Assembly: GCA_026936335.1 (NCBI GenBank)
Contig: JAPMXV010000001.1
Location: 372,001-436,000 of the forward strand
Length of the DNA stretch: 64,000 bases
Origin: Mantamonas sphyraenae STR306
Lineage: Eukaryota > Protista > CRuMs
Direction: 5' to 3'
The position numbers and the translations under genes are program-made. Each line of letters starts with the position of its first letter. Within the stretch, counting starts at the first letter, position 1. The notes under the pieces were generated by a model. The model searched no databases. It was not told the DNA's origin and saw nothing but the letters and a program-made list of their open reading frames with translations. Positions 26,801 through 64,000 of the stretch are shown piece by piece.

Positions 26801-27036
26801 CGTCGTCGTCCAAGGCACCGAGCAGCACCACATCGTCGTGGACATCTTGATCAAAGAGCTGGCCACGCATCAAATCCAGCATGTGCGCGTCGACGTCGTT
26901 CAGGTCCAGCTCTCCCTGTAATTCCAGCTGAGCAAGGGCACGCGCTCCTGGATCATCGTCGGCTTCACGATCCTCCTCGTCCAAGTCACCTTCCTCCTCG
27001 TCCTCATCATCGTGCTCATCTTCATCTTCATCGTCG

Positions 27037-27080
<44 letters not shown>

Positions 27081-34214: not shown

Positions 34215-34370
34215 GTGCAAAGTCTCAATGGCGCTGTGCGGAGACGGGAAACTGGGAGGGAGGGAGGAGGAGCGTGTGTTGCAATGGGTCGGAAAGGTTC
34301 TCGAGGACCGCGCCGTCGAAACAAAAGCAATCCCTGCCCAAGAGCCTCTGATATTTATTTGGCAAAAGAG

Positions 34371-37300: not shown

Positions 37301-38969
37301 GCTGAGACCCGAGGCAGCACGCGCAAACGCACCGCGACGCAATTCACACATCAACATGAGCGAAACATTGAAGCGAGGCAGCTTATCACAAATTGCAGGC
37401 CGCAAAGGGAGTACGAACAGTGACAAGGGAGGAGAGGGCAACGTGGCGCCTGGAGCGAACCATGAGGCTCTGATGCGGCGTGCGTCGACGCGGAACATCA
37501 TGGCACGGACAGCAGGCAAGAAGGAACGCAAGGTGAACAAACACTTGCAGTCGATGCTGAACCAGGGGACGCAGGGTGTTGGAGAGGAGGGGCGGGTGGC
37601 TATGGGGCTGATTACGCTGTGGTTCGAGAGTGACGAGCTGGAGTCCAAGTACAGGGAGATGCGTGTGGAGCAGGAGGCACGAGAGACGGTGGTGTTGGCA
37701 AGGGCGGTGTTGCTGTTGATGGTGAGCATCGGAGTCATCGAGGTGGCAATGGTGGCAATGGTGGAAGATTTGCAAGGGATCACGGGGACAACAGTGGGCC
37801 TTGTGCTGCGTGTGGTTCTGTTGATGGTGGCGTGTGTGTACATGCTGGCGGGGAGCCAACAGGAGCGGCGAGATCGGTCACGGATGACCAATCCGTTCCG
37901 TGTGGCGACACAAGGGACCGAATGGACGCGACGGGTGTGCAGCCAGTGGAGCCGAGTGGGGTTGCTGGTGGCTGTGCTGGCGCTGCAAGCGGCGCAAGTT
38001 TGGTTGTACGAGGAAGAGCTGTATTTGAGTTCGCTGTGCCTGCCGATTTTGGTTGCGTTCATGTTTAGCGGGGTGGAGTTTGTGACGACAATGAGCCTGA
38101 TGACGGCAGGGGTTGTGTTTATGGTGGTGCTGATGTCGGTGCAAGAGTACAGCAACTTGGGCTGGGTGGAAGCATTGGTGAGCTACATGGGGGTGTGTAC
38201 TGGGGGAGCGTTTGCGCTGTATCATTGGGAGACGTCGTTGCGTGTGACGTTCCTGACTGGGCTGTCGCTGGAAAAGGACAAACGAGACCTTGTACGAGAG
38301 CAGCAACGCACGGATGCGCTGCTAAGCAGCATCATGCCATCGCTGATGCTGAAGCAGATGCGGAGCAGCAGCGAGTCGGCGGCGATCTCGACGTTTTCGG
38401 TGTACTTTCCGGACGCATGCATTCTGGTGGCAGACTTGGTTGGGTTCACGCCTCTGTGCAACCGGTTGAGCGCTGTGGAAGTGGTGGAGATTCTGAACGA
38501 CGTGTTTGGCCTGTACGACAAGGTGGCCCACAAGCACGGGGTGCAAAAGATCAAGACGCTGGGCGATGCGGTGGTGATTGCGTCGAGTCCGTATCTGGGC
38601 GTAAAGGGCAATCCGGCACATGCGCTGGCGCGGACTGCGCTGGACCTTGTACGCGTGACAAAGGAGTACCAGGGCCGGGATGGGGTGGAGCTGAAGGTTC
38701 GTGTGGGCATAGACTGTGGCCCTGTGGTGGCGGGTATTCTGGGCAAGACCAAGGTGTCGTGGGATCTGTATGGACAAGCGGTGGACACGGCGACGGCGAT
38801 GGAATCGAGCTCCGAGACAGGGCGCATTCACGTGACCGAAGCGTTTGCAAAGTTGGTGGACGAAGTGTACGTTGTGGAGAAGCGTGGGCGTGTGGCATTG
38901 GACGTGCACGGGGAAACGCGCGTGATGGAGAGTTGGTTTCTTGGGGAGAAGCGGCGGACGGCGTGGTGA
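34371..38969 (+). CDS. Multi-pass membrane nucleotide cyclase with two TM blocks and two class III catalytic domains
   Basis: EKIKTIG...FDVFGDCVNTAARMQSHG and ADLVGFT...KIKTLGD...WDLYG..V.TA..MES, each preceded by a hydrophobic TM cluster. Confidence 0.9.
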   Translation: MASTDRNADLSTRPSRMMSDAVPMFDLEELATSSSNESEGRSRVHAMLHSHSTRERTLSQSSSGSADRVGVSPIPLLNLDRRQSVHGSIATPEQSTYGQRSKSSLSQLTSPARGMSRAPSLGSGSPVQHPGSVARRMSASGFGKQFSPRIQRQIANFVGSDSVAEESHMEGVTERTSSRVHSVEEETNEESGVEPLVDVVAEELENGVQVEMALQPLLNTSDGLSSMLDNLSMKTVRLQFDQEELERSFQANLPELTAHYLPFLLLFLFVFANAEQMTLFAEHFSGQSWMSMPGIAYLVFIGVVYSLAVSLLGVRTRQASHSVHGQTRAVLLIIAAGSLVLQMIFVQRLYIATQVAVAAASFTLTGFASYSSLYLAVAYVLLPVLVFAMGFVVDPVAAEAVMSSRAFWLSFALLANIVLMLYLSMRLVESDAREQFLFDYFRLLYLEEVEAQRAINDRYLGNILPSAIIAKLEADPSLIAEPHDDVSVMFCRFQGLDMPKDREEVADLLRTFAKILKVTDELTDAHEAEKIKTIGSNTVMIVAGVPEQREKHARVLVDLALDLRDALNTLYEQGRIRRVHCQIGINSGSLVAGVLSTRAGLSFDVFGDCVNTAARMQSHGAIDRIHVSSSTYLHVKDDFPFVVREPMDIKGKGVMQTYFVDTEQLERKQPTTSTATRATDASADSSKGGVRASLMSRAHSLRTVKASRAKRMAKGMAEEEERESKVVEKPQRARRRSSASGSQSSDYSSPRRFRMESLMEIPETGLGEEEDVETGEAGEAAVLQKSGSSTGSDGLEMRWEDVRPSEDNEEMEEGDGFDVMFSNPELWRTRVRAARLPSQGSLGRMEIPAGQTRVQRTLKFSGLTYEREAFRTTRRLRSSTIDSGSSRGTEDTGTVEGGEWDGQGATSSDVRALVSPKRTRLERRGRAMSEASGSPPKRRHVGATVAPIVGDVRQESEVERGDRGGDDGTLDAVLVGSLRPEAARANAPRRNSHINMSETLKRGSLSQIAGRKGSTNSDKGGEGNVAPGANHEALMRRASTRNIMARTAGKKERKVNKHLQSMLNQGTQGVGEEGRVAMGLITLWFESDELESKYREMRVEQEARETVVLARAVLLLMVSIGVIEVAMVAMVEDLQGITGTTVGLVLRVVLLMVACVYMLAGSQQERRDRSRMTNPFRVATQGTEWTRRVCSQWSRVGLLVAVLALQAAQVWLYEEELYLSSLCLPILVAFMFSGVEFVTTMSLMTAGVVFMVVLMSVQEYSNLGWVEALVSYMGVCTGGAFALYHWETSLRVTFLTGLSLEKDKRDLVREQQRTDALLSSIMPSLMLKQMRSSSESAAISTFSVYFPDACILVADLVGFTPLCNRLSAVEVVEILNDVFGLYDKVAHKHGVQKIKTLGDAVVIASSPYLGVKGNPAHALARTALDLVRVTKEYQGRDGVELKVRVGIDCGPVVAGILGKTKVSWDLYGQAVDTATAMESSSETGRIHVTEAFAKLVDEVYVVEKRGRVALDVHGETRVMESWFLGEKRRTAW

Positions 38970-39025: not shown

Positions 39026-41287
39026 TCACAGGCCCTTGACAGTGAGAAAGGCGTCTTTCGAGGGGTCGCGTCCGAGAAAGTCGACGAGGGCATCCATGGA
39101 GTCGCGGGAGCCGCCGGTGCCGAGGATGTACTTGCGGTACTTTGCGCCCATGTCTGTGTTCATGACGCCGTTCTGCTTGAACTGGAGGAACATGTCTGCG
39201 GAAAAGACCTCTGACCAGAGGTAGCCGTAGTAGCCAGCGTCGTAGCCGCCCATGAGGTGGCCAAATGCGGCGACGGGGTTTGTGCCCGGGGTGTGCTCGA
39301 CCTTTGTGATGTCTGTGCGCAGGGACTCCCAAAGAGTCTCAGAGGGGCCCTGGAGCTGGTTTGTGTGGACGGTCATGTCAAAGACGCCAAAGAAGATCTG
39401 GCGGAGGGTGAGGAGGGCGACGTTTGCGTTCTTTGCGGCGACCATGCGGTCGATGGTGTCCTTGGGCAGTTTGTCGTCAGTGTTCTTGTAGTGACCACTC
39501 ATGCGCTCGAGGATCTCGGGCTGCCAGACCCAGTTTTCGAGCATCTGGGACGGGGCCTCGACAAAGTCGCGCTCGACGTTTGTGCCTGCAAAGCGGGCGT
39601 ACTTGGCCTGTGTGCAGAGGCCGTGCATGACGTGGCCAAACTCGTGGAAGTAGGTGACGACCTCGTTGTGGTTGAGGAGGGAAGGCTTGTCTTCGGTTGG
39701 CTGGTTGAAGTTGCAGACCATGGCTGCGGCGGGTTTCTGACGGGTGGAGCCGTCTTGGGAGAGGCAGCCCGGCTGGAGCGGGAAGCAGGCGGCGTGTGTG
39801 TACTTGCCGTCGCGCGGGTGGAGGTCGAGGTAAAAGTGGCCAACAAAGTCGTTTGAGGCAGCGTCGTGGACCTGGAAGAGCTGGACGTCCTTGTGCCAGA
39901 CTTGGGGCTGGTCGACTTGAGTGAACACGAGGCCGAGAAGCTCCTGGTAGATGTCGAGGAGAGCCTTGGTGACGATCTGGATGGGGAAGTACTGGCGGAT
40001 GGCCTCGTCGTCGACCTGGTACTCGGTTTCGAGGAGCTTGTGGTGGTAGTAGCGGAAGTCCCATGCGTTGAGCTTGCCGTCAAAGTCGACGCCGTTGTCT
40101 TTGCACTCCTGTTCCTTGAGCTGGAGGAGCTTTTCCTTCTCTGCGGCGGCGGCGGGCTGGAGTTTCTCGATGAGCTCGTTCTCCATGTCCATGACGGCGT
40201 CCGAGTTCTTGGCCATCTTGACCTCGAGCTTGTAGGCGGCGTGGTGTTGGTAGCCCATGAGTTCGGCAATCTGCTGGCGAAGCTGGACGGCGCGCTCAAA
40301 GAGGGGCACGTTCTCGTCGATGAGCTTGGAGGAGTTTGTGACCTCCATGGTTTTGCGAGTGGCCTCGACCTGGCACTTGTCCATGACGGGAAGTAGGTCG
40401 GGGTACTTGAGAGTGAAGACGTACTTGCCGTCGTCGTCGAGCGGGTGGCTCTTGACAAAGTCGTCGGGGAGACCGGTGAGCTCGTCGGCGGAGAAATGGA
40501 GCTTGGTGACCTCTTCGTTCATGTTTTTGGAAAACTCGATGCATGCGTCGGAGAGTTCCTTCTTGAGCTCCTTGATCTTGTCCTGGGTTTCCTGATCGAG
40601 CTCGAGGCCGTTGCGCTTGTAGCCGAGGAGGACCTTTTCCATGAAGCGCTTGTCCTCGTCGTCGAGATCGAGGTCGCCTGGGTTGGCAAGGATGCGCTGG
40701 TGGGCGGCGGAGAGCTTGAGAAAGACGTCCTGACGCATGCCGTCGTCAATGTCAAACTGCGAGAGTTTGCGGTCTGCTTCTGTGCTTGCCTCGCGGATGG
40801 CCTTGTCCTCGCAGACGTACTGTGGGAAGTGGATGCTAGAGCCTTGCGTGCGGGACCAGCGCTCGACGTCTGCGATGGCCTGGAAGGTGTTTTCCCAGGT
40901 GAGGGCGTCTGGACGGAAACGGGAGGAGGATTGGGGGAGTGGCAAACGGGGAAGAGGCGGACGGAAGGCGGAGGGGGAACCGGGAGGGGGGGGGGGGGTA
41001 GGGGAGCAGGAAGGGTGAGTGCGTGGGCAAAGGTGGTGAGGAGAGGCGTAGGTGAAACGAGGAGGAAGCAGGAAAGTGTGTGGAGGGGCGGGAGGGCGGA
41101 AGAGGGATTCGCGGGGGCAACTCCCTGGGGAGTTGGAGTTGGAGGGGAACATACCGTCGTCGAGGGCGGCAATGGAGTCAGAAACAGCCTGGACCTTTTC
41201 GATGATCTCGTCCGCCTTTTGGGCGATCTGATCTGCAGTGAGAGTCCAGTCGAGGAATTCCGGGGCGGCGTATGCGTCGGAGGACAT
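39026..41287 (-). CDS. Thimet oligopeptidase/neurolysin (M3A metallopeptidase); 246-nt in-frame intron 40909-41154
   Basis: FYLDLHPRDGKY.HAA, FHEFGHVMH, DFVEAPSQMLENW, GGYDAGYYGYLWSEV. Confidence 0.95.
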   Translation of the reverse strand: MSSDAYAAPEFLDWTLTADQIAQKADEIIEKVQAVSDSIAALDDGMFPSNSNSPGSCPRESLFRPPAPPHTFLLPPRFTYASPHHLCPRTHPSCSPTPPPPPGSPSAFRPPLPRLPLPQSSSRFRPDALTWENTFQAIADVERWSRTQGSSIHFPQYVCEDKAIREASTEADRKLSQFDIDDGMRQDVFLKLSAAHQRILANPGDLDLDDEDKRFMEKVLLGYKRNGLELDQETQDKIKELKKELSDACIEFSKNMNEEVTKLHFSADELTGLPDDFVKSHPLDDDGKYVFTLKYPDLLPVMDKCQVEATRKTMEVTNSSKLIDENVPLFERAVQLRQQIAELMGYQHHAAYKLEVKMAKNSDAVMDMENELIEKLQPAAAAEKEKLLQLKEQECKDNGVDFDGKLNAWDFRYYHHKLLETEYQVDDEAIRQYFPIQIVTKALLDIYQELLGLVFTQVDQPQVWHKDVQLFQVHDAASNDFVGHFYLDLHPRDGKYTHAACFPLQPGCLSQDGSTRQKPAAAMVCNFNQPTEDKPSLLNHNEVVTYFHEFGHVMHGLCTQAKYARFAGTNVERDFVEAPSQMLENWVWQPEILERMSGHYKNTDDKLPKDTIDRMVAAKNANVALLTLRQIFFGVFDMTVHTNQLQGPSETLWESLRTDITKVEHTPGTNPVAAFGHLMGGYDAGYYGYLWSEVFSADMFLQFKQNGVMNTDMGAKYRKYILGTGGSRDSMDALVDFLGRDPSKDAFLTVKGL

Positions 41288-46369: not shown

Positions 46370-48346
46370 CTACTTTGGCGTACTTGCATTCTTCTGCTGC
46401 TTGAGTTGGCCACGCACCTTTTTCCACTTTGCACCTGCTGTGACACTGACGTTGTTGCCTTTTGCAAGCGCCTCTTTGGCACGCTTGCCAAAGAGTTTGA
46501 CCTTGTCGCCGGCCTTGTTGGAGGAAGAGGCGTCGCTGTTGCCTCTCCTTCGGCCACGGAGAAAATCCATGCTGGAGCGCGATGGGGATGGAGTGGGGAG
46601 GGCCGCGGCGGTGGATGCGTCTGTGTCGGCCTGGGGTCTGGTTTGGGCGTCGTCGTCATCGTCAGTGGATGAACGGGACAGGTCCAGGTCGGAGGAGATG
46701 GAGGAGGAGCTGGTGGTTCGTGTGGACCTTGTGTCAATCTGGGCTTCGTCGGAGGTGGTAGGGGCAGCAGCTGCTTTGTCTTTGCGTGAGAGGCGTGTAC
46801 GTAGGCTGGCAAGGCGCTTTTTCTCTTTCTGGGCCTCGCGCTGCTGCATCTCGTGGCGCAGGCGTGCGAGGTCGCGCTTGACGCTGTCCTGTTCACCGAG
46901 CTCTTCGGCAAGCTGATTCTTTGTGTCTATGAGGCCACGGTAGGCTTCTTCGAGTTGTGTTTCGAGGTCTTTGATGCGTGCATGAGCGGCATCGAGCTGT
47001 GTGGTGGCGTCGTCGCGCTGGGAAAGAGCGAGCGAGGTTGCCTCCTCGGCAGCCTCGATCTGTGCGGCGTGCGCGCTGCGGAGGACAAGCAGATCTGTGC
47101 GTTGCTGGTCCTGTGCGGTTTCCAGCTCACGCAGCTGGTCGGCAAGGTTGACCATTTCGGCAAACATGCGTTCGCTGCGCACACCGGCGTCGACGGCTTC
47201 AAGGCGTCCGTGGAGCCGATCAAGCTCGCGCTGCTGCTTCAGTTGTTCTTGTGCGTGCTCATGGAGCTCTTGGTCCATGACATGCATGCTGAGCTTGCTT
47301 GCGGCGAGCTGTGCTTCCAGCTCCTCCTTTTCGATGGCCAAATTGTTGGAGCGTGTGCGCTCGTGTTGGAGTTCGATGTCTGCGTGCTGGAGATGGGCGA
47401 CGCGATGGCGCAGGTCTTGCACCTCGAGGTCGAGTTCGGCGGTGTTGAGCTTGCTGCCGATCAGCTGCTGCTCGAGGGTTTTGATTTCGGCCTGTGCGCG
47501 GGCCTCGCCCGAGGCTATGATGGCGCCAACACGGCGGACGAGATCTGTGGCGACGCGGGGGTCGAGGATGGCGTGTTGCATGTCGTCCAGCAGCAACTCA
47601 AGGTCGTCGGCTTCGTCGTGCTGTGCGTCGACGCCTGCAGCATCGAGGAGGTTGGAGGCGCGAGCACGACGCAGCTGCTTCTGTTCGGTGAGGAGCTGAT
47701 GGATGGGCTCGATGACTTCGACAAGAACGGCGTACTGCTCCTTGGTGAGGGTGGTCTGGAGGTTTGTGACGAGAACGGCGGCGGCAATGGAAAAGGACTT
47801 TGCGGTGATGCGGTCTTGGGTGAGCATCTGGTCGAGGTCGAGGTCAAAGTGCAGGCGGACGGGTTCGAGAAGGGTGGCGAGACGTTCGTTGCGGAGTGCG
47901 TCGTGGATGGCGACCTGGAGGTCGGTGCACTCGACGTGGCCGACAAGGTGAAAGTCGGGGAGGCCATCGGCGGTGGTGTTGGAGTCCTCCAGGGCAGCAA
48001 TGGAATCGATGTTGAGGCTGAGCAAGGTCATGTCCAAGCGGATGCCGCGTGTTTCGGGGGTGTCTGTCTCGGAGGCGACGGGAGCAGGCGGGAGGACAAA
48101 AGACGGGCTGGCAATGCGTACAATTAGGCGAATGCGAGGAGTGTGGCGTGTGGAGGGTGGTTTGAGGTAGAGGAGTTTGACGTCGTGGACGAAAAAGTCA
48201 AGGAGCTCGCGGACGGTGTCCATGTCGCTGACGAGGGTGAGCGGGTTGACAAAGGCACGTGCGTTGACATCGCCCTGTTCGGGAAAGAGGAGTAGATCTG
48301 TAAAGTCAGCCGAGGGGTCGGACGAGTCGGACGGGTCGGACGGGTG

Positions 48347-48381
<35 letters not shown>

Positions 48382-50141
48382 TGAGAACGAGGTCGTCGTT
48401 GGTTGTGGTGGCAGCAATGGCCATGAGCTCGCTGTCAAAGAGGCCACGGTGGGCCTGGATGTGCTCGCGGGTGGCGTTGCTCCAAGAGCGGATCTGGGCA
48501 CGGAGGCTGACGAGACAGTCAGCCGAGATATGTTTGGCCCACTCGAGGCTGGACGAGGCACTGTTGCGCGCTGTGGGAGGCTTGCCAGCGGGAGGAAGAG
48601 GCGGGGGTTGGAGAGTGTCGGTGGAGCGGGAAGACTGGTCGAGGAGGACTTGGTTGATGAGGGCCTCCTTGGTTGCAGAGAGGGGCTCGGGCATGAGGAG
48701 AAGGGAATAGTGACTGTGTTTGAGGGGGGAAGAGGGCACCTCCTGCATGGTGACCTGGCCGACGCGAACTTCGAGGACCTGCTTGAAGTAGCCAAGGACG
48801 TGTTGGTGGTCACTGGCGTTGGAAAGGCGGTCGAGACTACGTCGTTCGAGGTCGACGGAGCGGCGGGCAAGGTCAGAGTCTGTGGAGTCGTCCAGCGGGC
48901 CGGTGGTGGCGAAGCGATCCTCGACCAGGGAGGCGACGGAAGAGAAGGAAGAGACGCGGAACATGGTGCGTGTGTCTGTGCCAGATGAGTGCTCGGCGAG
49001 GATGGGGTTTGCGCGATGGAAGGAGCGGATGGAGGCGAGATGGAGGTCGGTGAGCATGACAACGTAGCCACGCATGATGTCGCGTGAGTGTTCGCCGTAG
49101 AGGAGGTTGAGGAGGAATTGCGGGAGCGTGAGACGGAAGGAGATGGCCGGTGTGTTGTGTTCGTCAGTGTGGATGGGGTCGGGAAGGATTTCTGGGTCGA
49201 TGGGGACGTCGGAGGCGTGTGTGATCGTCGTTTGCGCCGCGTTCAAGGGCGGCATTGACAGAGTCGACAAAGAGGAGAAGGGCGCGCCAGTCTGGACGAG
49301 GCAGCACGAGTTCGATGACGTCAAAGATGACGTCTATGTGAGTGGAAATGGCCTGGTTGGTGTCTGAGCGGACGTTGGAGGAGATGCGTAGCTGGAAACT
49401 CATCTTTTCGAGAAAGGTGTGGGCGCGTGGGGCAAGGGAGTCTGCGTCTGGCGGGTGGAGGACGCTCATGGTAACACTGTCAACCTGCGCGAGGCGGTAG
49501 AGGGGAGTGACGGGGCCCCCTTCGGCGGCAGCGCGAATGTCCTGAACGGTGGTTTGCTCCCAGTTTGCGTTTGTGCTGAGGAGGGCAATGTTGGAGAGCT
49601 GCAGGCGGATACCAGGGGCTTTTCGGAGCGGATCGTTGCGCAGACGGGGCGTAAACTCGACGCAGATGTCGTTGATATGGATCTGGAGGTTGTCGATGAC
49701 CTCTTCGGCAAGGCCACGGTCGGACTGGGAAGGGGAAGGGGAGGATGAAGAGGAAGAAGAAGAGGATGAGGATGCAGAAGGGTCCTGGAGCTGCTGGCGA
49801 GCAGCCTCGAGGTCTTGGGCGGCGGCCTCGGGGTCGAGCCAGAGGTCCTCGTCGGGGCTGATCTCTTCCAGGACGAGGGTGACGGTGTCGAGGTCGACAG
49901 TGACGCTCTCAGTCTTGAGTTTTGTGTAGGGGATTTTGAGGGCAATGCGAGAGACGCTTGCGGTGACGATGCGTAGATTGTTGGGCAGGTGGAGGAGGTG
50001 GTGGAGGACGACGGTGTTCAGTTTGAGATCAGTGAGCTCCGCCCTGCCTGTGAGGAGTTTGAGGGAGAGGTTTTCCGGAGCAAAGTCCTTGACAAAGAGG
50101 GCTAATTTGGATGCCAGGGCCTTTGCGACGATGTTGGACAT
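46370..50141 (-). CDS. Chorein-N bridge-like lipid transfer protein (BLTP3/UHRF1BP1-like) with C-terminal coiled coil; apparent frameshift ~49220
   Basis: MSNIVAKALASKLALFVKDFAPENLSLKLLTGRAELTDLKLN...IPYTKLKT, LLSTNANW. Two overlapping ORFs offset by +1. Confidence 0.75.
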
Positions 50142-52718: not shown

Positions 52719-55700
52719 ATGACGACCACGAGTGAGTTTTCATCGTCGCTCGGTGACGATGACATCTTTGCGTGGATGGAGGCGGCCGAGGCAGCCGAGC
52801 AGCAGATGCTGGAAGCATCGCAGCGGTCGGATCGCTCACCGAAGCGAATGCTAGAGGAGGGGGAGGAGGCATCGCATGTGCAGCAGGATGTGAAGCGGAC
52901 ACGCGTGTGCTCGGAGGACTCTGAAACGAGCGTGCCTGTGGCATGGTCAAACCGCAGTATGAGCAGTGAAGAGATGACGAGCGCACGCAGCAGCTCGAGT
53001 TCGAGGTGAGCGATTCCCGAAAAACATTCTTTTCGTGTGTTTTTTGGCGGGAAGGCGGCGGGAACGGGCAGCGCTAACACCGACAGAAACAGCAGCAGCG
53101 CTGAGCAAGAAACAAGGGACCAAGGAGGGATGCCGCACATGGGCAACGATGACTTGGCGTTGCTGAACGCGAAGCTGAAGGAATACTACGGATACGCAAA
53201 AGTGCGATCGTTTCAGCGGAACGCAATCGCGTGTGTGCTGAGTGGGCGCGACAGCTTTGTGCTGATGGCCACGGGAGCAGGCAAGTCGCTGTGTTTCCAG
53301 CTGCCGCACATGGTGTCTGGCAAGATCACGCTCGTGGTGTCGCCTCTGATCTCGCTGATGGCCGATCAGGTGAACGCACTCGAGGAAAACGGGATCCGTG
53401 CATGCTCGCTTGGCTCGACGACGCCGCTGGAGACGTTGCGAGGCGCAGAAAGGGGCGAGTACGACCTGGTGTACCTGACGCCGGAAAAGGTGAGCGTTTG
53501 GACGCAGGGCCTAAAGTCGATGCACGCGCAGCGGGAAATCGGGCTGATTGCCATCGACGAGGCACACTGTGTGTCGGAGTGGGGCCACGACTTTCGTCCA
53601 GAGTACAGGCAGCTTGCAGCTGTGCGTGAACATTTGCCAGGAGTGCCGATGATGGCGCTGACGGCGACGGCGACGCCGAGGGTGGGCGAAGACATCATCC
53701 GCAACCTACAGCTGGCCAATGTGTGGGTGGAACGGTCTTCGTTCAATCGCAGCAACCTGTTTTACGAGGTGCGGCGCAAAGCAAGCGGGGCAAATCAAGT
53801 GTACAACTCGCTTGCGTTTATGCTGCCACGCAGGGACGGTGGGGACTCGCTGGTGGTGGGTACGCACTCGCCGTACTTCAAGGCGTTTGCAGGGACGCAA
53901 CTGAGCCTGTTGACGGGCGTGTCTGTGGTGTACTGCAGCACGCAAAGAACGACCGAGGCCGTGGCAAACATGCTGAGCAACAACGGTCTGCGTGCACGTG
54001 CGTACCACGCGGGGCTGCCTCTGTCGGAACGAGAGGAGGTGCACAAGGCGTTCATGAACGATGAGCTGGACGCGCTGGTGGCGACGACTGCGTTTGGGAT
54101 GGGCATCGACAAGGGAGACATCCGGCGCGTGGTGCACTACGGTCTGCCCACGAGCGTGGAAGAATACTTCCAGCAGACAGGGAGGGCCGGGCGTGACGGA
54201 CTGCCTGCAGAGTGCATCCTTGTGGCCGGGGACGGAGACGCACTCACGGCGGCGCGTGTGATTGAAAAGTACAACCCCAACTCGACGGGGCACCTGATGA
54301 GCTTGCTGGTGGTGATGAAGCAGTACCTGCACACGCGCAAGTGCAGGCGGGCGATGATTCTGGAGTACTTTGGAGAGGAAGGCCAATGCGAGAGCGCGAG
54401 TGCGTTGGCAGGGCAGGCGCCGGAAAACAACTGCGCAGGGTGCGACAACTGCTTGCGTGAGATGCGGCTGCCTGGTACGTCTGTGCGTGGCTCTGGTGTG
54501 CGCAACGTGGGCCAGGAGGCGTATGTGCTTTTGGCCACGGTGGTGCAGATGAACGAACACTTTGGTCTGTCGCTGGTGGTGGACGTGTTGCGCGGGTCGC
54601 GGAGCAAGAGGGTGCTGCAGTACGACATGGACGAGAAGCCCATGTACGGAAAGGGCAGCCGGTTCACAAAGAACTGGTGGAAGAGCCTTGCGCATCTGCT
54701 GTGCGATGAGGGATACCTGGAGGAAGTGAGCAAGGACAAGTTTACCGTGTGGATGTGCTCGTCCAAGGGCCGTGCGTTCCTGGACAAGAACAGGTACTAT
54801 GAGCGGGGCTCGGAGCAGTATCGGCGGCAGTACGACCACGTGGGTACACTGGAACTGCCGCTGAACAAGGTGCTGCTGATGGAGCACGACCGCGTGCATC
54901 GATACCGATCACCGACGCAGCACGGAAGCAAGGAGGTACTGGAGACGCCTGCGTTCCGTGTGGAGGGCAGTGAAGACACGAGGCAGGGGGCTGGGCGAGC
55001 GCTGCAGGAGGATGAGCGGGTTCTGTTTCGCAAGCTGCTCAAGGTGCGCACGGAGGAGGCGGCCAAGGCCAACGTGGCAGGAATGAGTGTGATGGACACG
55101 CACACACTGCAGCTGCTTGCGATGCAGCGGCCTGTGGACAGGGAGCACATGTTGGGTGTGGAGGGCGTGGGTGTGGTGAAGCTGGAAAAGTACGGGGCAG
55201 CGTTCTGCGAGGCGATCGCAGCGTTTGCGGAGGAGCACAACATGAGCACGAACGTGAGCAGCGAGGCGCTGGAGGCGCAGAGCGAGGCAAACACGCAGTT
55301 GCTACGCAACCTGGGCAGCAGGTTGGACGGGAGCGTGACGGCACCGAGGATGACGCCTGTTCGGGAAGAGGCGATGTCGCTGCTGAGACACACGCAACTG
55401 GGTGCGGAAGAGATGGCACAGCAGCGTGGAGTGCAGACGCAAACGCTGCTCGGGTATCTGAGCGACGGATTCCTTGCGCTTCCAAACGGCAAGGAGCTGA
55501 TGATGGAGCACTGGGAAAGGCTGCAGGTGCGGCAAGAGGACTTTGTGCGCGTGGCAAACGCAGCCAAGGCGTTCAAGACGCAGCACGGCCTGGAGTCGTA
55601 CAGGGAGGTGCGTTTGGGTGCGCTGAAGCAAACGATCGGGGACGACGGCGTGGGGTTTGGTCTGATGCGGATTGTGCTGGTGGCGCTGGAACTGGGAGTG

Positions 55701-55853
55701 AATGGAGGGGAAGAGGAAGTGGAGGTGGAGGATGCCGAGGACACGTTGATTCGGGAGCTGCGGGAGGAGGTTGCGCGAAAGGACGCGCTGATTGCGGACC
55801 AGCTGGCACAGTTGCAGGAGCTGCGACAACAGCTGGAGGGGCGGGGCAGGTAG
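52719..55853 (+). CDS. RecQ-family DNA helicase (DEAH, Zn-RQC, HRDC; intron 53006-53086)
   Basis: MATGAGKSLCFQ, IDEAHCVSEWGHDFRP, ALTATAT, QQTGRAGRDG, CRR...CAGCDNC, HRDC GVG..KLEKYG. Confidence 0.95.
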
Positions 55854-55860
55854 TGCAGGA

Positions 55861-57014
55861 TCATTCTTGTGTGTGCGCTGGCGCTTGATGTCCGAGGAGG
55901 TGGACGCGGAAAGAGTGCGCTTGCGTGGGCCGGTTCGAATCGACTGGAGGGGGGCGGCCGAGGCGTCGTAGACAGAGCGAATGAAAAAGTGGCGGTCGCC
56001 AAACATACGAAGACCAGCGAATTTGTACAGGGGCGCGTCGTGTGCGGAAAAGCCCGGATGGAGGGTGTCTGCGGCAGTGGATTGGAGGAAACGCGGGCGC
56101 TCGGAGCCCAAAGTGTTGCGTAGGCCACAGACAAGGCCAGAAAAGGTGGCTCGGATCTCGTCAATGAGACGGTCGTTGAGAAGGGAGGCAATGGTTGCGC
56201 CACCGGCGGCGACGTCGACAAAGCGCACGTTGTGGGTGCCGCGAAGGTGCTGGAGAATCCAGGGTAGAGAGAGGCGGTCTGTGCGGGCGTCGTCGGGCTG
56301 GGCAAGGACGATGGAGAGGTTGAAGGTGTCGCGAAGGACAGCGTCGAGGGTGTCGTCGTCAGCGTGGAGGGGCAGGTCTTGGGAGTCGAGGTGGGCGTCG
56401 AGGTGGGCGAGCAGAGTGCTGCGGCCTTGTTCGGAGGTGTAGACGACTGCGGGGAGGTCTGGTCCGAGGACAGGGTGTTCGGGAGGCAGGTTGCCGGAGT
56501 AGGTGACGACGGCTTGGAGAGGCGGGTCGGTGGAGCGCGTTTGGGAGCGGTGCTCCACGAGATCGTCGTCTTGGGGCGCGTAGCGAGCACCAGGCTCGAG
56601 GCGCAGCTGGCCGCCACTGAGAAGGACGGCGTCGGCAAGGGCCCAACCAAAGTTGAGGAGGCGCCAGTCTGCAGCAGAGCCTGCCTCGCCGTCAGGGACG
56701 TGTGCGAGGGCGATGTGTTTCGAGTCGCTCGCGCCTTTGTCTAGGAAGGAGGTGATGCCGTCTGCGGGGGGGAAGGGGGGTGGTTAGGGTGGGGGGGGGA
56801 ACAAGGGAAGGAGGGGGGAGGGGAGAGGGGGGTGATTACCGAGGGAGGAGACAGAGTTGCTCCAGATGTAGGGGCGGGTTTCAGGGACGGTGACGTGGTC
56901 GAGGGAGTAGAACTCGCACATGTCTGCAAGGGAGATGCGACCCGCGTCGTCTGTGGTAAAGTCGCCGAGGCGTGCGATGGGGGTTGACACGGCGGAGGAG
57001 GAGGAGGAGGTCAT
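55861..57014 (-). CDS. RibD C-terminal/DHFR-like reductase domain protein (intron ~56762-56839; 3' end uncertain)
   Basis: Spliced RPYIWSNSVSSL|DG, WALADAVL, QAVVTYSGNL, VDVAAGGATIASLL...LIDEI. The frame has no stop until 55302 unless a CA slip near 55870 is corrected. Confidence 0.7.
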
Positions 57015-57044
57015 GTGTGGGTTGGCGGACTGCGCGCCAGCCAA

Positions 57045-57896
57045 ATGGAACATGTGGAGCTGGTGGGGAGGCTGGACGAACGTGGGTGGTCCGAAATGAG
57101 AGATCGGATGCAGGAGATGGTGTCGCTGAGGTCACTGGTGTGGCTGGACAGCGGGTGCGACGAAGAAAGGGTAAGGGAGTTGGTGGAGCTGGTCAAGAAG
57201 CACAAAGGAGTCGTCAGCGTGGCACTGCACTCTCATCAATGCGGAGACGTTGGCCTGCTGGGAAGTTTGTACGAGGCAACTCAGGAAAACCTGCGTGGAA
57301 TGGACGAGCTGGAGGCCGGGATTGAGTGTGGAGACGTGCAGGAGGTCAGTCGGTGTTTGCGGCATGGCACGCCAGTGCAAAGGCGGGTGTTGCGGAAATG
57401 TGTGATGGCAAATGATGGGGTTGTGTTGAATGTGCTGTTGGAGCACGGGGGCGATCCGGAGGAGGCTGTGGAGAAGGCGGCAGGGTTTGGGCGGCCGGCA
57501 CTGGTGTTTGTGGCCCTGTGGCACGGTGCTACGCCGCCGGCGGGTGTGCGATATGGAGGGCAGCGGTTGGTTTGCGAGATGTTGGTGGAGGGGTGGAAGA
57601 GGCAGGATCTGAGAGAGTTGTTTGAATGCGAGGAAAGGGTCGCTTTTGAGGGGATTCAGGGGTGCATGATGCCGGTACAGGTACAGTGGAGTGAGGATGT
57701 ACATTGGATGTGGAGTGGACACATGGATAGAGCGGTGGAGGTGGCGTTGGTGATGAACGGGGAGGAGAGGGAGGCGATGTTTGCGTGTGGAGGGATGGAG
57801 GAGTATGTGGAGGAGGGTGGGTGGGATGGGTGGGTGACACTGCCGGATGAGGTGATGGAGAGGGTGATTGGGTGGATGGGGAAGGGATGGTGGTGA
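57045..57896 (+). CDS. Hypothetical protein with degenerate ankyrin-like repeats and a C-terminal F-box-like motif
   Basis: GDVQEVSRCLRHG, VLNVLLEHGGD, AAGFGRP; terminal WS..VH...TLPDEVMERVIGWM. Confidence 0.5.
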   Translation: MEHVELVGRLDERGWSEMRDRMQEMVSLRSLVWLDSGCDEERVRELVELVKKHKGVVSVALHSHQCGDVGLLGSLYEATQENLRGMDELEAGIECGDVQEVSRCLRHGTPVQRRVLRKCVMANDGVVLNVLLEHGGDPEEAVEKAAGFGRPALVFVALWHGATPPAGVRYGGQRLVCEMLVEGWKRQDLRELFECEERVAFEGIQGCMMPVQVQWSEDVHWMWSGHMDRAVEVALVMNGEEREAMFACGGMEEYVEEGGWDGWVTLPDEVMERVIGWMGKGWW

Positions 57897-58158: not shown

Positions 58159-60928
58159 TCATTCGAGGCGCTGGCGTTTGGAGGAGGAGGAGGAGGAGGA
58201 GGAAGGGTCTTTGCGCTTGGGGAGGGTGAAGGAGGGGATGGGGTAGGCGTTGACGAGTGCGGTGGTGGTGGGACGGGTGTTGATGTGGGGTGTAATGCGG
58301 TCGATGAGTGTGTGGAGGAGGGTGTGCAGTGTGGCGTCGCTGGGTTTGGGGGTGTCGAGCCAGGCGATCTTGAGGGAAAGGGAGGTGACACCACGGGTGA
58401 GGGTGTTGCTGATGGCAAGTTGTACCTGCTGGTAGGTGAAGTGTGGCCTGAGGAGGCGGACAAAGAAGGCCAGGTCGACAGGCGGCACGCCAACGTTGCC
58501 AAAGCGCCAGGATGATGTGTCGCAGCAGGGAGTTCAAGCTGCCGTTGTTGATCAGATCGCGCAGTGCCTGGAGCTCGTGTGTGTGCTGATGGCGAGGGTG
58601 CTTGGCTGCGCGTGCCTTCATGTGTGCCAGCAGCGTCTTGAACTCCCGCGCCGTGCAGCTGCCACGCTCGTCGCTGTTGGCGCTGCTCCAGCCACTGCGC
58701 ACAGAATCGGGATGCCACTTGTCCACCTTGTTGGTGGTGAAGTGCTGGTCGTAGTCGCATTGCGTCCAGTGTGGGTCGCTGTCGTTGTCAGCAGGGCGTC
58801 GTGCTTCCTGCAGCCACACCTGGGTCTGCTCGTGTTCCTTCCAGGTGCTGGGATGGGTCCTGTTGCCGAGTGTGTCCATCTCTGTCATGAGCAGGTGGAG
58901 AGGAGGGCGTAGTTGGGGTTGCCGTGGTCGTGTGGCTCCTCCAGCCAGCACACCTTCAACCCAGCCTTTGACACACCCATGGCCAGACCAGCGTTGTTGA
59001 TGGCATGGCTGCACGCTTCTTGATCCATGCCACGTCCGAGCAGGATGAGGCAGAGTGCCATGTCGCCCTGGGAGAGGGGAATGTTGCCCAGAGCGAGCTG
59101 AATCTGTCGGACCAGCGTGGTCGAGGTGCCATGGCAGACCACAACACGCGCCTGCAGGGTCATGAGGTCGGGGATGTCGTCGATGGGATGCTCGTTGGCC
59201 AGGGTGTGCAAGTGCTTCAGCAGTGCCGTGTGCTCCTTCTTGTTGCTGTGCATGCGCTCGCTCTTGCGCCAGTTTGTCCAACCACTGCGCACAACGCCAT
59301 CTGGCAGTCCCTCCTCCACGGCCATCAACTCCTCCTCTGTGGGCTCGGGCAGAACAAGCTTGGGTATGCGGAGGGTGTTGACGAGTGCGGTGGTGGTGGG
59401 GCGGGTGGTGATGTGGGGTGCGATGCGGTCGATGAGGGTGTGCAGGAGGGTGTGCAGTGTGGCGTCGCTGGGTTGGGGTTGTCAAGCCAGGCGATCTTGA
59501 GGGAGAGGGAGGTGACACCCCGAGCGAGGGTGGCGCTGACGGCATCGGCAACGTGGTGGTAGGTGAGGTGTGGCCTGAGAAGACGGACAAAGAAGGCCAG
59601 GTCGACAGGCGGCACGCCAACGTTGCCTAGCGCCAGGATGATGTGTCGCACAAGGGACTGCTTGCTGCCGTTGTTGATCAGCTCACGCAATGCATGGTGC
59701 TCGTGTGAGTACTGATGGCGAGGGCACTTGGCTGCGCGTGCCTGCATGTGTGCCAACAGCGTTTCGAACTCCCGCGCCGTGCAGCTGCCACGCTCGTCGC
59801 TGTTGGCTTTGCTCCAGCCACTGCGCACAGACTCAGGATGCCACTTGTCCACCTTGGTTGTGATGAGGTGATGGTCGTAGTCGCATTGTGTCCAGTGTGG
59901 GTCGCTGTTGTTGTCAGCAGGGCGTCGTGCTTTCTGCAGCCACAGCTGGGTCTGCTGGTGCTCCTTCCAGGTCGTGGGATGGCGTCTGTCGCCAAGAGTG
60001 TCCATCTCTGTCATGAGCAGGTGGAGGAGGGCGTAGTTGGGGTCGCTGTGGTCGTGTGGCTCCTCCAGCCAGCACACCTTCAACCCAGCCTCTGTCACAC
60101 CCACGGCCAGACCAGCGTCACGGATGGCGAATCTGCACGCCTGTTGATCCATGTCACGGCTGAGAAGGGTGAGGCAGAAGGCCATGTCACCCTGGGAGAG
60201 GGGAATGTTGCCCAGAGCGAGCAGAATCTGTCGGACCAGCGTGGTCGTGGTGCCATGGCAGACCACAACACGCACCTGCAGGGTCACGAGGTCGGGGATG
60301 TTGTCGATGGGATGCTCGTTGGCCAGGGTGTGCATGTGGTTCAGCAGTGCCGTGTGCTCCTTTTTGTTTCTGTGGCTGCGCTCGTCGCTGAGTCCCCCTG
60401 TCCACCCTTTGCGCACAACTCCATCTGGCAACTTGCTCGTCTTGTCACGCCTGCTTTCTTCCGTGCACCGTTGTCTCCGTTCTTGGCCCCCCTTGCCCGT
60501 GTGCTCGACGTTCCTGTCTCCGTGCCACTGCCAGTCGTGACCCTGTGCCCGTGCTTTCCATTCCATGTGCTGCTTTGTGTCCCAGAGCGACATCCGCTGC
60601 GGCCCCTCTGTCGTGTGCGGCGACTGCTTCGTTTGGGCAGCGACTGTTCATCCATGTTCTCCTGCTCCATGTCGTCTGTGTCGTCATCGCTATTGTCCCC
60701 AGGTATGGAATCCCCATCTATAGTGGTTGTTGACGTTGTGGTCGTGGCTGTGTGGTCTTGCGAGACGGGCTGAGCCCAGGCCTCGTCGCTCGCCTCGACA
60801 TACCGGAGCACGTCATCCTGAGTCATCCAATCGGTGTCGTGGAAGCGGTAGAAGCGCCCTGCGGGTTGTGCGGTGTCCACATACAGCGTTCCAGGCTCGT
60901 TGAAGCGTTCGGAGGAAAGGTTAGACAT
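58159..60928 (-). CDS. Unknown four-domain repeat protein, copy A (frameshifts at ~60447, ~59473, ~58900, ~58501)
   Basis: ATG MSNLSSERF at 60928; two 375-aa units, each of two homologous domains; C-terminal PKRK...KRQRLE. Frameshifts identified by comparison with copy B. Confidence 0.7.
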
Positions 60929-61454
60929 ATTGCGGCGCGCAGCAGGCGCAGGCGGCGGGGGAGGAGTGGTGTTGGATGTGTGCCGGCGGTTCGGATAGTG
61001 TAACAGAACAGGAACCCACACAAAGGACTGCATGGAGTTCTGTGGAGACGCGTAGCCGGGTGGGGAAAGATGATGCCGAGGAATGTAGCCTCGTTGCAGG
61101 TTCATTGGACCGAAACTGAGTGGAACACGATAGGGGGTAGGTTGGGATGGGCGTGTAATGATGCATGTGCGTGAAGGTTGGAGGATGGTTAGCATAGCGT
61201 GGACGGTTGGGCGCAACGAGGGACCTTTGAAGGCGGATGGAGCGGCAAGTGTGTGCAAAGGACGGTTGACGGAACCGAGATGCGAAACATGGAAGGGTAC
61301 TTACACGGAGTAGGGATGGTATGAGCGGAAGGGGGAACTGGTGTTGCTGTGAATGGTGAGAAGTTGTTGTTGGAAACGTTGGTTGGGCAGGTGAGGGTGA
61401 GTGGAATTTCGCACACGCCACTGAGGACAAAGGTGCGTGTGATACGTGTGAGTG

Positions 61455-64000
61455 TTACTCTAGGCGTTGGCGTTTGGAGGAGGAGGAGGAGGAGGAGGAG
61501 GAAGGGTCTTTGCGCTTGGGCAGGGTGAAGGAAGGGATGGGGTAGGCGTTGACGAGTGCGATGGTAGTGGGACGGGTGGTGATGTGGGGTGTGATGCGGT
61601 CGATGAGGGTGTGGAGGAGGGTGTGCAGTGTGGCGTCGCTGCGTTGGGGTTTGTCGAGCCAGGCGATCTTGAGGGAGAGTGTGGTGACGCCGCGGGTGAG
61701 GATGTTGCTGATGGCACCCACGACTTGCTGGTAGTTGAGGTGTGGCCTGAGGAGGCGGACAAAGAAGGCCAGGTCGACAGGCGGCACGCCAACGTTGCCC
61801 AGCGCAAGGATGACGTGTCGCAGCAGGGACAGCAGGCTGCCGTTGTTGATCAGCTCACGCAGTGCATGGTGCTCGTGTGCATGCTGATGGCGAGGTTGAT
61901 TGGCTGCGCGTGCCTTCATGTGTGCCAGCAGCGTCTGGAACTCTCGCGCCGTGCAGCTACCACGCTCGTCGCTGAGAGAGTGCGCTGCCCAGCCACTGCG
62001 CACAGACTCGGGATGCCACTTGTCCACCTTGGTGGTGGTGAGGTGGTGATCGTAGTCGCATTGTGTCCAGTGCTGGTCGCTGTCGTTGTCAACAGGGCGT
62101 CGTGCTTTCTGCAGCCGCAGCTGGGTCTGCTTGTGCTCCTTCCAGGAGGTGGGATGGGGCCTGTCGCCGAGAGTGTCCATCTCTGTCATGATAAGGTGGA
62201 GGAGGGCGTAGTTGGGGTCGCCGTGGTCGTGTGGCTCCTCCAGCCAGCACACCTTCAACCCAGTCTTTGTCACACCTGTGGCCAGACCAGCGTGGTTGAT
62301 GGTAACGCTGCACGCCTGATGATCCACATTACGGCCGAGGAGGATGAGGCAGAAGGACATGTCGCCCTGGGAGAGGGGAATGTTGCCCAGAGCGAGCTGA
62401 ATCTGTCGGACCAGCGTGCGCAGGGTGCCATGGCAGACCACAACACGCGCCTGCAGGGTCATGAGGTCGGAGATGTCGTCGATGCGGTGCTCGTTGGCCA
62501 GGGTGTGCATGTGGTTCAGCAGTGCCGTGTGCTCCTTCTTGTTGCTGTGCATGCGCTCGCTCTTGCGCCAGTGACGTCCAGCCACTGCGCACAACGCCAT
62601 CTGGCAGTCCCTCCTCCACGGCCATCAACTCCTCCTCTGTGGGCTCGGGCAGAACAAGCTCAGCGATGTCTATGGCGTTGACTGCGTCAACGGTGGTGGG
62701 ACGTGTGGTGATGTGGGGTTTGATGCGGTCGATGAGGGTGTGGAGGAGGGTGTGCAGTGTGGCGTCGCTGGGTTTGGGGTTGTCCAGCCAGGCGATCTTG
62801 AGGGAGAGGGATGTGACGCCGCGAGTGAGGGTGTTGCTGATGGCACCGTTCACATGCTCGTAGGTGAGGTGTGGCCGGAGGAGGCGGACAAAGAAGGCCA
62901 GGTCGACAGGGGGGACGCCAACGTTGCCCAGCGCCAGGATGATGTGTCGCACAAGGGACAGCTGGCTACCGGTGTTGATCAGCTCACGCAGTGCATGGTG
63001 CTCGTCTGTGTGCTCATGGCGAGGGTACTTGGCTGCGCGTGCCTTCATGTGTGCCAGCAGCGTCTGGAACTCCCGTGCCGTGCAGCTGCCACGCTCGTCG
63101 CATGTTGCAGCACCGGTCCAGCCACTGCGCACGGACTCAGGGCGCCATTGTTCCTCGGTGGTGGTGAGGTGGTGGTCGTAGTCGCATTGTGTCCAGTGTG
63201 GGTCGCTGTCGTTATCAGCAGGGCGTCGTGCTTTCTGCAGCCACAGCTGGGTCTGCTTGTGCTCCTTCCAGGTGGTGGGATGGGGTATGTCTCCGAGAGT
63301 GTCCATCTCTGTCATGAGCAGGTGGAGGAGGGCGTAGTTGGGGTCGCCGTGGTCGTGTGGTTCCTCCAGCCAGCACACCTTCAACCCAGCCTCTGTCACA
63401 CCCATGGCCAGACCAGCGTCTTTGATGGAATGGCTGCACGCCTGTTGATCCAACTCACGGCCGAGAAGGGTGAGGCAGAAGGCCATGTCGCCCTGGGAGA
63501 GGGGAATGTTGCCCAGAGCGAGCTGAATCTGTCGGACCAGCGTCAACTGGGCGCCGTGGCAGACCACAACACGCGCCTGCAGGACCATGAGATCGGAGAT
63601 GTTGTCTATGGGATGCTCGTTGGCCAGGGTGTGCATGTGTCTCAGCAGTGCCGTGTGCTCCTTCTTGTTGCTGTGGCTGCGCTCGTCACTGATTCCCGCT
63701 GTCCACCCTTTGCGCGCAACACCATCTGGCAACTTGTTCGTCTTGTCCACCCCTGCGTTCTTCCGTGCGCCGTTGTCTCCGTTCTTGGCCCTCCCTGCCC
63801 GTGTGCTCGACGTTCCTGTCTCTGTGCCACTGCCAGGCGTGACCCTGACCCTGCGCTGACCGCTGCCTTTCATATTTTGTGGACCAGTCTGTCGGCTAAT
63901 GTGGCCTCTGCGTCGTCGTGTGCGGACTCTTCTTGTGCACCTCGGCTGCCATTCGTCCGTGTTCTCCTGCTCCATGTCGTCTGTGTCGTCGTCGCTGTCT
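61455..64000 (-). CDS. Unknown four-domain repeat protein, copy B (5' end beyond right edge; frameshift ~62572)
   Basis: Paralogue of copy A at ~3.3-kb spacing, with the same domains and the same NLS-like tail. Confidence 0.75.

Follow-up and report, generated by a model that had tools for sequence, protein, structure and literature searches.

Organization of the Tandem Genes

The window analyzed here, a stretch of 64,000 nucleotides of Mantamonas sphyraenae STR306 (contig JAPMXV010000001.1, positions 372,001–436,000), contains two tandem paralogues on the minus strand. Gene A extends from 61455 to beyond 64000, with its 5' end and first ~80 codons outside the window, and contains one frame break (~62575). 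Gene B is complete (58159–60928), would encode ~920 aa if read through, and contains four frame breaks (60446, 59474, 58902, and 58503). The two genes are 88.5% identical over an alignment of 2549 nt, with a period of ~3300, and each consists of two units of ~375 aa, composed in turn of a pair of homologous domains, a and b. The four units are mutually 87–88% alike over ~1070 nt in nucleotide alignment. Tandem paralogues with two a+b units each, as proposed in an earlier note on this DNA, are therefore confirmed by a similarity far beyond chance. The domain size of ~185 aa suggested there did not hold: the a and b domains are indeed homologous, but their common core is ~140 aa, and the repeat periods are ~197 aa for a with its conserved linker of ~50 aa and ~178 aa for b with its linker of ~35 aa.

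In gene A, a low-complexity N-terminal linker, acidic and then basic (63733–64000), is followed by the cores of domains a1 (63298–63732), b1 (62713–63144; the domain modeled below), a2 (62172–62607, with the +1 break at ~62575), and b2 (61584–62018), all on the minus strand. The Trp/His-rich linker of ~50 aa between a1 and b1 (63145–63297) is conserved and has counterparts in all four units. The N-terminal region of gene B (60432–60928) includes an unassigned ~50-aa segment, a Thr/acidic stretch, and a basic low-complexity linker; it precedes the cores of a3 (59997–60431), b3 (59413–59843, break −1 at ~59474), a4 (58871–59307, break +2 at ~58902), and b4 (58285–58717, break +1 at ~58503), likewise on the minus strand. 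The intergenic spacer (60929–61454) is dissimilar to the DNA located 3' of the gene B stop codon.

A classical bipartite nuclear localization signal (NLS) has the pattern KR-x10-12-KRxR and lies in a disordered tail. The C-terminal tails of both proteins match this pattern, with KR-x12-KRQR in gene A (61458–61517, minus strand) and KR-x11-KRQR in gene B (58162–58218, minus strand), so that the NLS-like tail noticed earlier is present in A and B alike. Judging from this motif match, both proteins may be nuclear.

The genes had also been described as intronless unlike most of their neighbors. This contrast is wrong, since many neighbors are single unbroken ORFs of 2.8–6.3 kb and most genes of M. 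sphyraenae have a single exon (PMC10492846). An intron inside the divergent N-terminal linker is not favored, because this stretch is rich in purines and remains in frame in A as well as in B.

Frame Breaks and Coding Status

The array of ~5.3 kb contains five frame breaks, whereas the neighboring long ORFs, over 25 kb in total, contain none. These breaks are either assembly errors or the result of recent decay. Their uneven distribution favors decay, in which A and B would be young duplicates drifting under relaxed selection, with real breaks. On the other hand, three of the breaks are homopolymer-length changes and one is a dinucleotide slip, types typical of residual long-read error, and the likely source assembly is a PacBio/FALCON one (PMC10492846). 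Moreover, the four units do not contain a single in-frame stop; among the five alternative frames, four contain 20–66 stops and the remaining one, an antisense frame, contains two. ORFs on the opposite strand were rejected as the true genes, because it is the minus-strand frame that combines the lowest pN/pS, zero stops, and the best codon score. In the scripted analyses the breaks were read as X, and the broken genes were searched as separate pieces.

Domain Composition and Predicted Fold

Domains a and b share 37% identity over 135 aa (E = 3e-21). Thirty-four positions are invariant in all eight domains. The invariant residues include five basic ones (R6, R18, R53, R66, and K116) as well as E17, E25, H32, D81, and H135, found in both a and b. 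The b domains are basic (pI 9.5–10.7), the a domains are neutral to acidic (pI 5.7–7.1), and the His content is high (25–30 per unit).

The polar residues invariant in a and b, together with the abundance of His, could suggest an enzyme or a metal-binding protein in which E17, E25, H32, D81, and H135 form a composite a+b site and the variable patches described below line the substrate entry. We consider this very improbable: some invariant polar residues are expected anyway at 37% identity, neither a catalytic motif nor a fold match was found, and a series of four copies is more usual for a binder.

The model of b1 consists of six helices (pLDDT 69), with residues 110–125 below pLDDT 50 and no strands predicted; a six-helix fold of the domain is thus predicted with moderate confidence. 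The AlphaFold2 model of a whole unit (pLDDT 35) was unusable and was left out of the fold search. A Foldseek search of the b1 model against PDB and BFVD gave no match (best E 0.8, TM ≤ 0.33).

Searches for Relatives

No match was found in Pfam for the ORFs, the domains, or their sub-pieces (the latter up to E 10), nor in NCBIfam, PADLOC, or Rfam; PDB sequences, including a profile search, gave no relative, and the best PHROGs score (E 0.007, to an unnamed family) counts as blank. Searches of 5.8e9 proteins with a 372-aa unit and with a 144-aa a+b profile were also blank; they cover only proteins of ~205–650 aa and ~79–252 aa, respectively, and would therefore miss full-length relatives of ~920 aa. 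An exhaustive search of 1.84e9 cluster representatives of any protein length was blank as well. Viral contigs (including IMG/VR), phages, plasmids, metagenome contigs, and prokaryotic genomes did not contain relatives. Exact look-ups found nothing; ordinary neighboring genes are missing there too, so that the host species is not represented in that collection and the negative result has no bearing on expression. No sign of a toxin, an effector, or a virus of humans, animals, or crops emerged. The earlier failure to assign a known family was thus repeated in both sequence and fold searches, and A and B represent an unrecognized, lineage-restricted, duplicated modular family.

The orphan status, the duplication, and the limitation of breaks to the repeated genes would also fit an origin from an unclassified transposon or an endogenous virus of the host, either as a protein that the element still carries or as one that has been domesticated, the more so as ~12% of the M. 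sphyraenae genome is repeats, mostly unclassified (PMC10492846). However, within the window no transposase, reverse transcriptase, or capsid gene was found in or beside the array, and the similarity of A and B reaches no further than the stop codon, neither flanks nor terminal repeats (TIR or LTR) being shared. In addition, the neighbors are ordinary eukaryotic genes, codon usage and GC content are host-like, and IMG/VR, PHROGs, BFVD, phages, and plasmids gave no match. We therefore regard such an origin as improbable.

It should be mentioned that a resemblance to Myb/SANT/HTH helices had been noted previously; it found no support in Pfam (E 10, sub-pieces included) or in Foldseek. Myb/SANT repeats are three-helix units of ~50 aa with three tryptophans spaced 18–19 residues apart, the first of which lies 2–3 residues before the E-E-x-x-L helix. 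In the array, ~15 residues separate the tryptophan that follows RKG from the E..LL helix, and there is no ladder of three tryptophans, the next conserved one coming 110 residues later; Myb was rejected on this spacing. Neither the Pfam Myb/SANT/MADF models nor solved structures gave a match (E up to 10), and linker-histone H15, compared through Pfam only, gave none. Winged helix-turn-helix domains are three-helix bundles followed by a beta-hairpin wing. By eye, the array domain resembles them in the spacing of helices 3–5 and in the location of its most variable helix at the place of the recognition helix; wing strands are not predicted in the b1 model, in which residues 110–125 have a pLDDT below 50. 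Pfam, the PDB profile search, and Foldseek gave no support to the winged-helix idea, and it was rejected with hhalign: against a panel of ArsR and 54 other bacterial family profiles, ArsR reached a probability of 0.11% and ranked 38th of 55, and 72 of 100 column shuffles scored as high (positive control ArsR-LysR, 56%).

Diversifying Selection at Homologous Positions

Site models were applied to the four units, which come from one haplotype. The M0 omega of all units is 0.36 and differs from 1 (p = 1e-11); the scaffold is under purifying selection. At the same time ~4% of codons have an omega of ~12. The LRT of M2a against M1a was 43 for all columns and 31 once the columns next to gaps, breaks, and junctions had been removed; with double and triple changes allowed it was 16 (p = 3e-4). 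Parametric nulls reached a maximum of 4.3, and those with mosaic topologies a maximum of 9.1. Unseen copies acting as donors in gene conversion could inflate the site signal beyond the mosaic null.

The selected sites occupy homologous positions of a and b, one group at the beginning of helix 3 and another on the exposed side of helix 5, and all three selected a sites coincide with selected b sites. The hypervariable pair at the helix 3 start lies at 63544–63549 in a1 (unit positions 62–63) and at 62959–62964 in b1 (model residues 61–62), with a homologous pair in all a and b domains. On the exposed face of helix 5, the pair is located at 62845–62850 in b1 (model residues 99–100), and its a counterpart is unit position 101; all three pairs are on the minus strand. 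Variability along the domain is correlated between a and b (Spearman 0.24, p = 0.004; a value reached by one of 141 circular shifts). Amino-acid changes are clustered (p = 0.0002) and synonymous changes are not (p = 0.85). Helix 5 varies most (0.39 versus 0.04–0.22) and its variable face is opposite the hydrophobic one, while helices 1, 4, and 6 hardly vary; exposure alone is therefore an insufficient explanation. About 40% of the selected-site residues are hydrophobic (L, V, F, and A).

These data also bear on decay, which would make the selected sites tolerant positions at the surface, patches that unseen paralogues had converted, or multi-base mutations. Simple counting gives a pairwise dN/dS of 0.5–0.7, and omega is higher in gene B than in gene A (0.45 versus 0.29), a difference that is not significant (p = 0.4). 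Yet omega = 1 is rejected both for all units and for gene B alone (p = 0.002), by which a long-dead pseudogene was discarded, and the site signal holds under the multi-base and mosaic controls. Decay thus appears unlikely.

Thus, the array combines a repeated scaffold that is conserved with positive selection on exposed sites that correspond between the domains, as expected of repeat proteins with a hypervariable specificity code, and the earlier idea of a modular reader gains independent support. By analogy with PRDM9 fingers and fungal HNWD repeats, this pattern appears to be the signature of a modular binder with changing specificity.

Discussion

That A and B encode a modular binder with evolving specificity we consider probable. 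As to its ligand, we tentatively propose a lineage-specific recognition protein for a nucleic acid of changing sequence; the overall weight we give to DNA or RNA is somewhat short of even. Each gene encodes four domains of ~140 aa in the order a-b-a-b, predicted to have six helices and built on a conserved scaffold, and each domain would carry two small specificity patches, on the first turn of helix 3 and on the solvent-exposed face of helix 5. The patches would be rewritten by diversifying selection, and unit and gene duplication would reshuffle the modules. The C-terminal NLS may direct the protein to the nucleus, where the four modules would read a multi-part target, with the acidic/basic disordered N-terminus possibly recruiting partners. 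Candidate targets are transposons, integrated or invading viral DNA, and recombination or centromeric sites, as for PRDM9 and KRAB zinc-finger arrays.

A nucleic acid seems the most likely target in view of the basic b domains, the invariant R/K residues, and the NLS-like tail in both genes. Against it count the lack of a known nucleic-acid-binding fold, the neutral or acidic a domains, and the hydrophobic residues at selected sites, which suit a protein interface as well. The same fast-evolving binder may instead recognize a protein (for instance, one of viral, bacterial, or selfish-element origin in the nucleus, or a determinant of self versus non-self), an alternative that we hold to be possible though rather unlikely. 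It would produce the same selection signal and agrees with the hydrophobic variable sites, with the acidic to neutral a domains, and with a predicted all-helical fold unlike known DNA-binding domains. However, no signaling or nucleotide-binding domain is attached, unlike in NLRs, and chromatin or a nucleic acid would account no less well for the basic b domains, the invariant arginines, and the NLS-like tail.

NLR and HNWD sensors combine NACHT or NB-ARC with sensor repeats of the WD40, TPR, ANK, or LRR type; none of these families was matched in the complete gene B or in gene A minus its first ~80 codons. The precedent for a protein ligand is provided by HET-D and HET-E of Podospora, whose highly similar WD40 repeats read a protein through diversifying hypervariable sites that set specificity (PMC12222747). 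The array shares with them the combination of highly similar repeats and diversifying selection on hypervariable sites, but it is predicted to be all-helical and not a beta-propeller, has no NACHT or HET domain, carries an NLS-like tail, and consists of far fewer, larger modules.

C2H2 zinc fingers follow the pattern C-x2-4-C-x12-H-x3-5-H in repeats of 28 aa. In PRDM9 and KRAB C2H2 arrays, which are nuclear, near-identical tandem modules undergo concerted evolution with positive selection at few homologous positions (PMC6116924). The M. sphyraenae array is alike in its tandem modules of high identity, their concerted evolution, the concentration of selection on few homologous module positions, and its putative nuclear location, a functional analogy only: it has no C2H2 motif (by sequence and Pfam) and no PR/SET or KRAB domain, and its modules are predicted six-helix domains of ~140 aa that alternate between a and b, four per gene. 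TAL effectors and PPR proteins are composed of helical repeats with a residue code. The array resembles them in its predicted helical modules and adjacent variable residue pairs at fixed positions, but it has no Pfam or PDB match, and its modules are four times larger, only four in number, and carry two patches each, which excludes a one-repeat-one-base solenoid. A bolder version of the nucleic-acid proposal, to which we give little credence, is that a novel all-helical fold could serve as a programmable sequence-specific DNA/RNA reader whose two-patch residue code arose separately from those of zinc fingers, TALEs, and PPR/PUF repeats, and which a deep-branching eukaryote would deploy in an evolutionary contest with viral or selfish DNA.

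Neither sequence nor fold libraries contain a detectable relative of the domain, yet its evolution resembles that of a receptor with a specificity code, an idea that the short list of named selected positions makes directly testable. Should the signal disappear once more copies are analyzed, the array would be an ordinary orphan tandem duplication, of which there are many in protist genomes. A protein reader would give a first insight into innate recognition in CRuMs. A nucleic-acid reader would constitute a new modular DNA/RNA-binding scaffold, with a bearing on engineering and on the policing of transposons and viruses in deep-branching eukaryotes.

Architecture of the tandem array

The earlier note had described tandem paralogues with two a+b units each, and DNA, protein and domain alignments bore out this computed architecture. 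Both genes lie on the minus strand, 3.3 kb apart, and are 88.5% identical across 2549 aligned nt. Gene B, of about 920 aa, runs from its start at 60928 to its stop at 58159; gene A occupies 61455 to past 64000, its start lying beyond the window edge. Per gene there are two units of ~1125 nt (~375 aa), and all four units are 87–88% identical in DNA and 79–84% in protein. Each unit consists of an a and a b domain. Identity between a1 and b1 is 37% across 135 residues (E 3e-21), and at 34 positions all eight domains carry the same residue. The proposed homology of the domains therefore stood, while their proposed length of ~185 aa was reduced to a common core of ~140 aa, with a conserved linker of ~50 aa after a and one of ~35 aa after b. 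Both genes end in an NLS-like motif, KR-x11/12-KRQR. Beyond the stop codon, the 3' flanks of A and B align no better than shuffles. Residues 1 to ~50 of gene B (60770–60928, minus strand) look like a small folded segment without a match in Pfam or PDB; the gene A counterpart falls outside the window.

Sites informative on topology mostly pair the first units together, more than half of them lying within the first 19 codons. Past these the four units are nearly equidistant, a pattern that would fit near-simultaneous duplication or gene conversion, whose donors may be copies elsewhere in the genome.

Five indels of one or two bases interrupt the minus-strand array genes, one in gene A (62575) and four in gene B (60446, 59474, 58902 and 58503); three are homopolymer length changes and one is a dinucleotide slip. 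Since neighbouring genes form intact ORFs of 2.8–6.3 kb, the breaks are particular to the array, and they reflect either failed polishing in repeated DNA or recent decay. No in-frame stops were found in the array reading frame of the four units. For gene B alone omega (dN/dS) = 1 was rejected (p 0.002), and its omega of 0.45 did not differ significantly from 0.29 in gene A (p 0.4). We favor assembly error over very recent loss, and consider it improbable that the duplicates are relaxed or decaying. Homology searches used unbroken pieces as queries, and scripts treated each break as X.

Genomic setting

The window represents gene-dense protist DNA with ~60% GC. The M. sphyraenae assembly comprises 25 Mb (PacBio/FALCON, 59.2% GC); its genes are mostly single-exon, and repeats, mostly unclassified, form 12% of the genome (PMC10492846). 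The array genes had been thought intronless unlike their neighbors, but the long unbroken neighboring ORFs indicate that lack of introns is usual here. GC skew shifts steadily over 1–64000; it is close to -0.27 at the left end and reaches +0.2 to +0.45 on the right, with a cumulative minimum near 18 kb.

An intact RecQ helicase gene (53037–55853, plus; RQC, HRDC, weak C-terminal HTH_40 match) lies 2.3 kb from the array. The gene at 55302–56800 (minus) weakly matches the reductase-like RibD_C domain, and its long C-terminal part beyond this match has no assigned domain. Immediately downstream of gene B and convergent with it is an orphan ORF (57015–57896, plus), by eye with an ankyrin-like middle and an F-box-like C-terminal motif, without matches in Pfam or PDB. 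A 2102-codon open frame (23865–30173, minus) extends from a HAD phosphatase across LRR, an extensive acidic tract, BTB/BACK and MATH domains; it is probably two genes sharing one frame, or else an unusual fusion. Long ordinary genes lie at 1–5646 (minus), 8124–11912 (minus), 34215–38969 (plus) and 46370–50140 (minus); they include a TPR/MLP1-like nucleoporin, a VPS13/BLTP-like lipid-transfer gene and two ORFs that by eye resemble adenylate/guanylate cyclases. An MFE-2-like peroxisomal gene (15559–18759, minus) encodes two short-chain dehydrogenase domains, a hydratase and SCP2. The double dehydrogenase is typical of fungal-type and the SCP2 tail of animal-type MFE-2; here both are joined. Its two dehydrogenase domains (16910–18749, minus) are themselves an 886-nt tandem duplication with 99% identity, which may be very recent or reflect gene conversion or an assembly artefact.

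An orphan family with a predicted helical fold

The family had been called unrecognised, and no relative emerged from any collection searched: Pfam, PHROGs, NCBIfam, PADLOC and PDB sequences; 5.8 billion proteins, queried with sequences the length of a unit and of a domain; 1.84 billion cluster representatives, in an exhaustive scan with an a+b profile; and DNA from viruses, metagenomes, prokaryotes, phages and plasmids. The protein collection included the Mantamonas plastica proteome, so the transcriptome of this species holds no detectable homologue. For a conserved neighbor of the array, the thimet oligopeptidase gene (39029–40855), the closest relative is from M. plastica (72% identity; next, 55%).

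AlphaFold2 gave pLDDT 35 for the whole unit. A single-domain model (b1), built from an a+b alignment of seven sequences, was moderate (pLDDT 69, pTM 0.68; residues 1–19 and 110–125 poorly modelled), with six predicted helices at residues 23–39, 46–58, 61–72, 79–89, 95–108 and 128–140. Foldseek searches of PDB and BFVD with it gave no match (best E 0.8 and 0.27, respectively; TM <=0.33), and this moderate model, compared with those two collections, represents a possible new fold. The protein family is real, undescribed and orphan, with neither a sequence nor a fold relative found. An origin from a mobile element is quite improbable, and an enzyme still more so.

The likeness to Myb/SANT suggested earlier failed on tryptophan spacing and on the lack of a Pfam match. 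Since helices 3–5 resembled a winged-helix core by eye, we ran hhalign against family profiles built from 80 bacterial loci, one for ArsR and 54 for other families; the probability for ArsR was 0.1%, no better than column shuffles (ArsR–LysR control, 56%). Judged by these comparisons, the family is filed under neither heading.

Selection on exposed patches

Codon models of the four units from one haplotype gave omega 0.36, and neutrality was rejected (p 1e-11). An extra positively selected class improved the fit (LRT 43); once columns close to a gap, break or junction were dropped, the LRT was 31 and ~4% of sites had omega ~13. Changes of two or three nucleotides at once are reportedly a recognised source of false positives in such tests; in a model that allowed them, the LRT was still 16 (p 3e-4). 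Null simulations (n=47) reached at most 4.3, and mosaic topologies (n=47) at most 9.1.

Selected sites were unit positions 62, 63 and 101 in domain a and 259, 260, 297, 298 and, more weakly, 244 in domain b. In the a/b alignment 62–63 correspond to 259–260, where helix 3 makes its first turn; position 101 corresponds to 298, in the middle of helix 5. The variability profiles of a and b are correlated along the domain, and amino-acid changes are clustered while synonymous ones are not. Helix 5 is the most variable, and its changes lie on the side facing away from its hydrophobic residues, while helices 1, 4 and 6 are almost invariant.

Proposed function

The array protein, presumably expressed and nuclear, is probably a binder with evolving specificity. 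A nucleic-acid ligand is the likeliest single reading, though at less than even odds. In its favor are the NLS-like tail, the basic b domains (pI 9.5–10.7) and basic residues that are invariant at five positions; the variable sites, too, occupy a helix N-terminus and an exposed helix, both common DNA-contact elements. That the binder reads protein is rather less likely; the neutral to acidic a domains and the hydrophobic residues frequent at variable sites point that way. A new nucleic-acid code is, by a little, less likely again.

Uniform repeats with selected patches read DNA in PRDM9 fingers (PMC6116924) and protein in Podospora HET-D/E WD40 repeats (PMC12222747). The array modules share with both a fixed scaffold and fast-changing patches, but their ligand we only infer. 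Each protein carries four copies of a conserved module, predicted to be helical. In the most likely mode of action, two exposed patches on each module would determine the ligand; duplication and conversion would maintain a uniform scaffold even as selection alters the patches. By analogy, the family appears to behave as hypervariable-repeat recognition proteins, belonging to none of those known and built on what would be a new scaffold.
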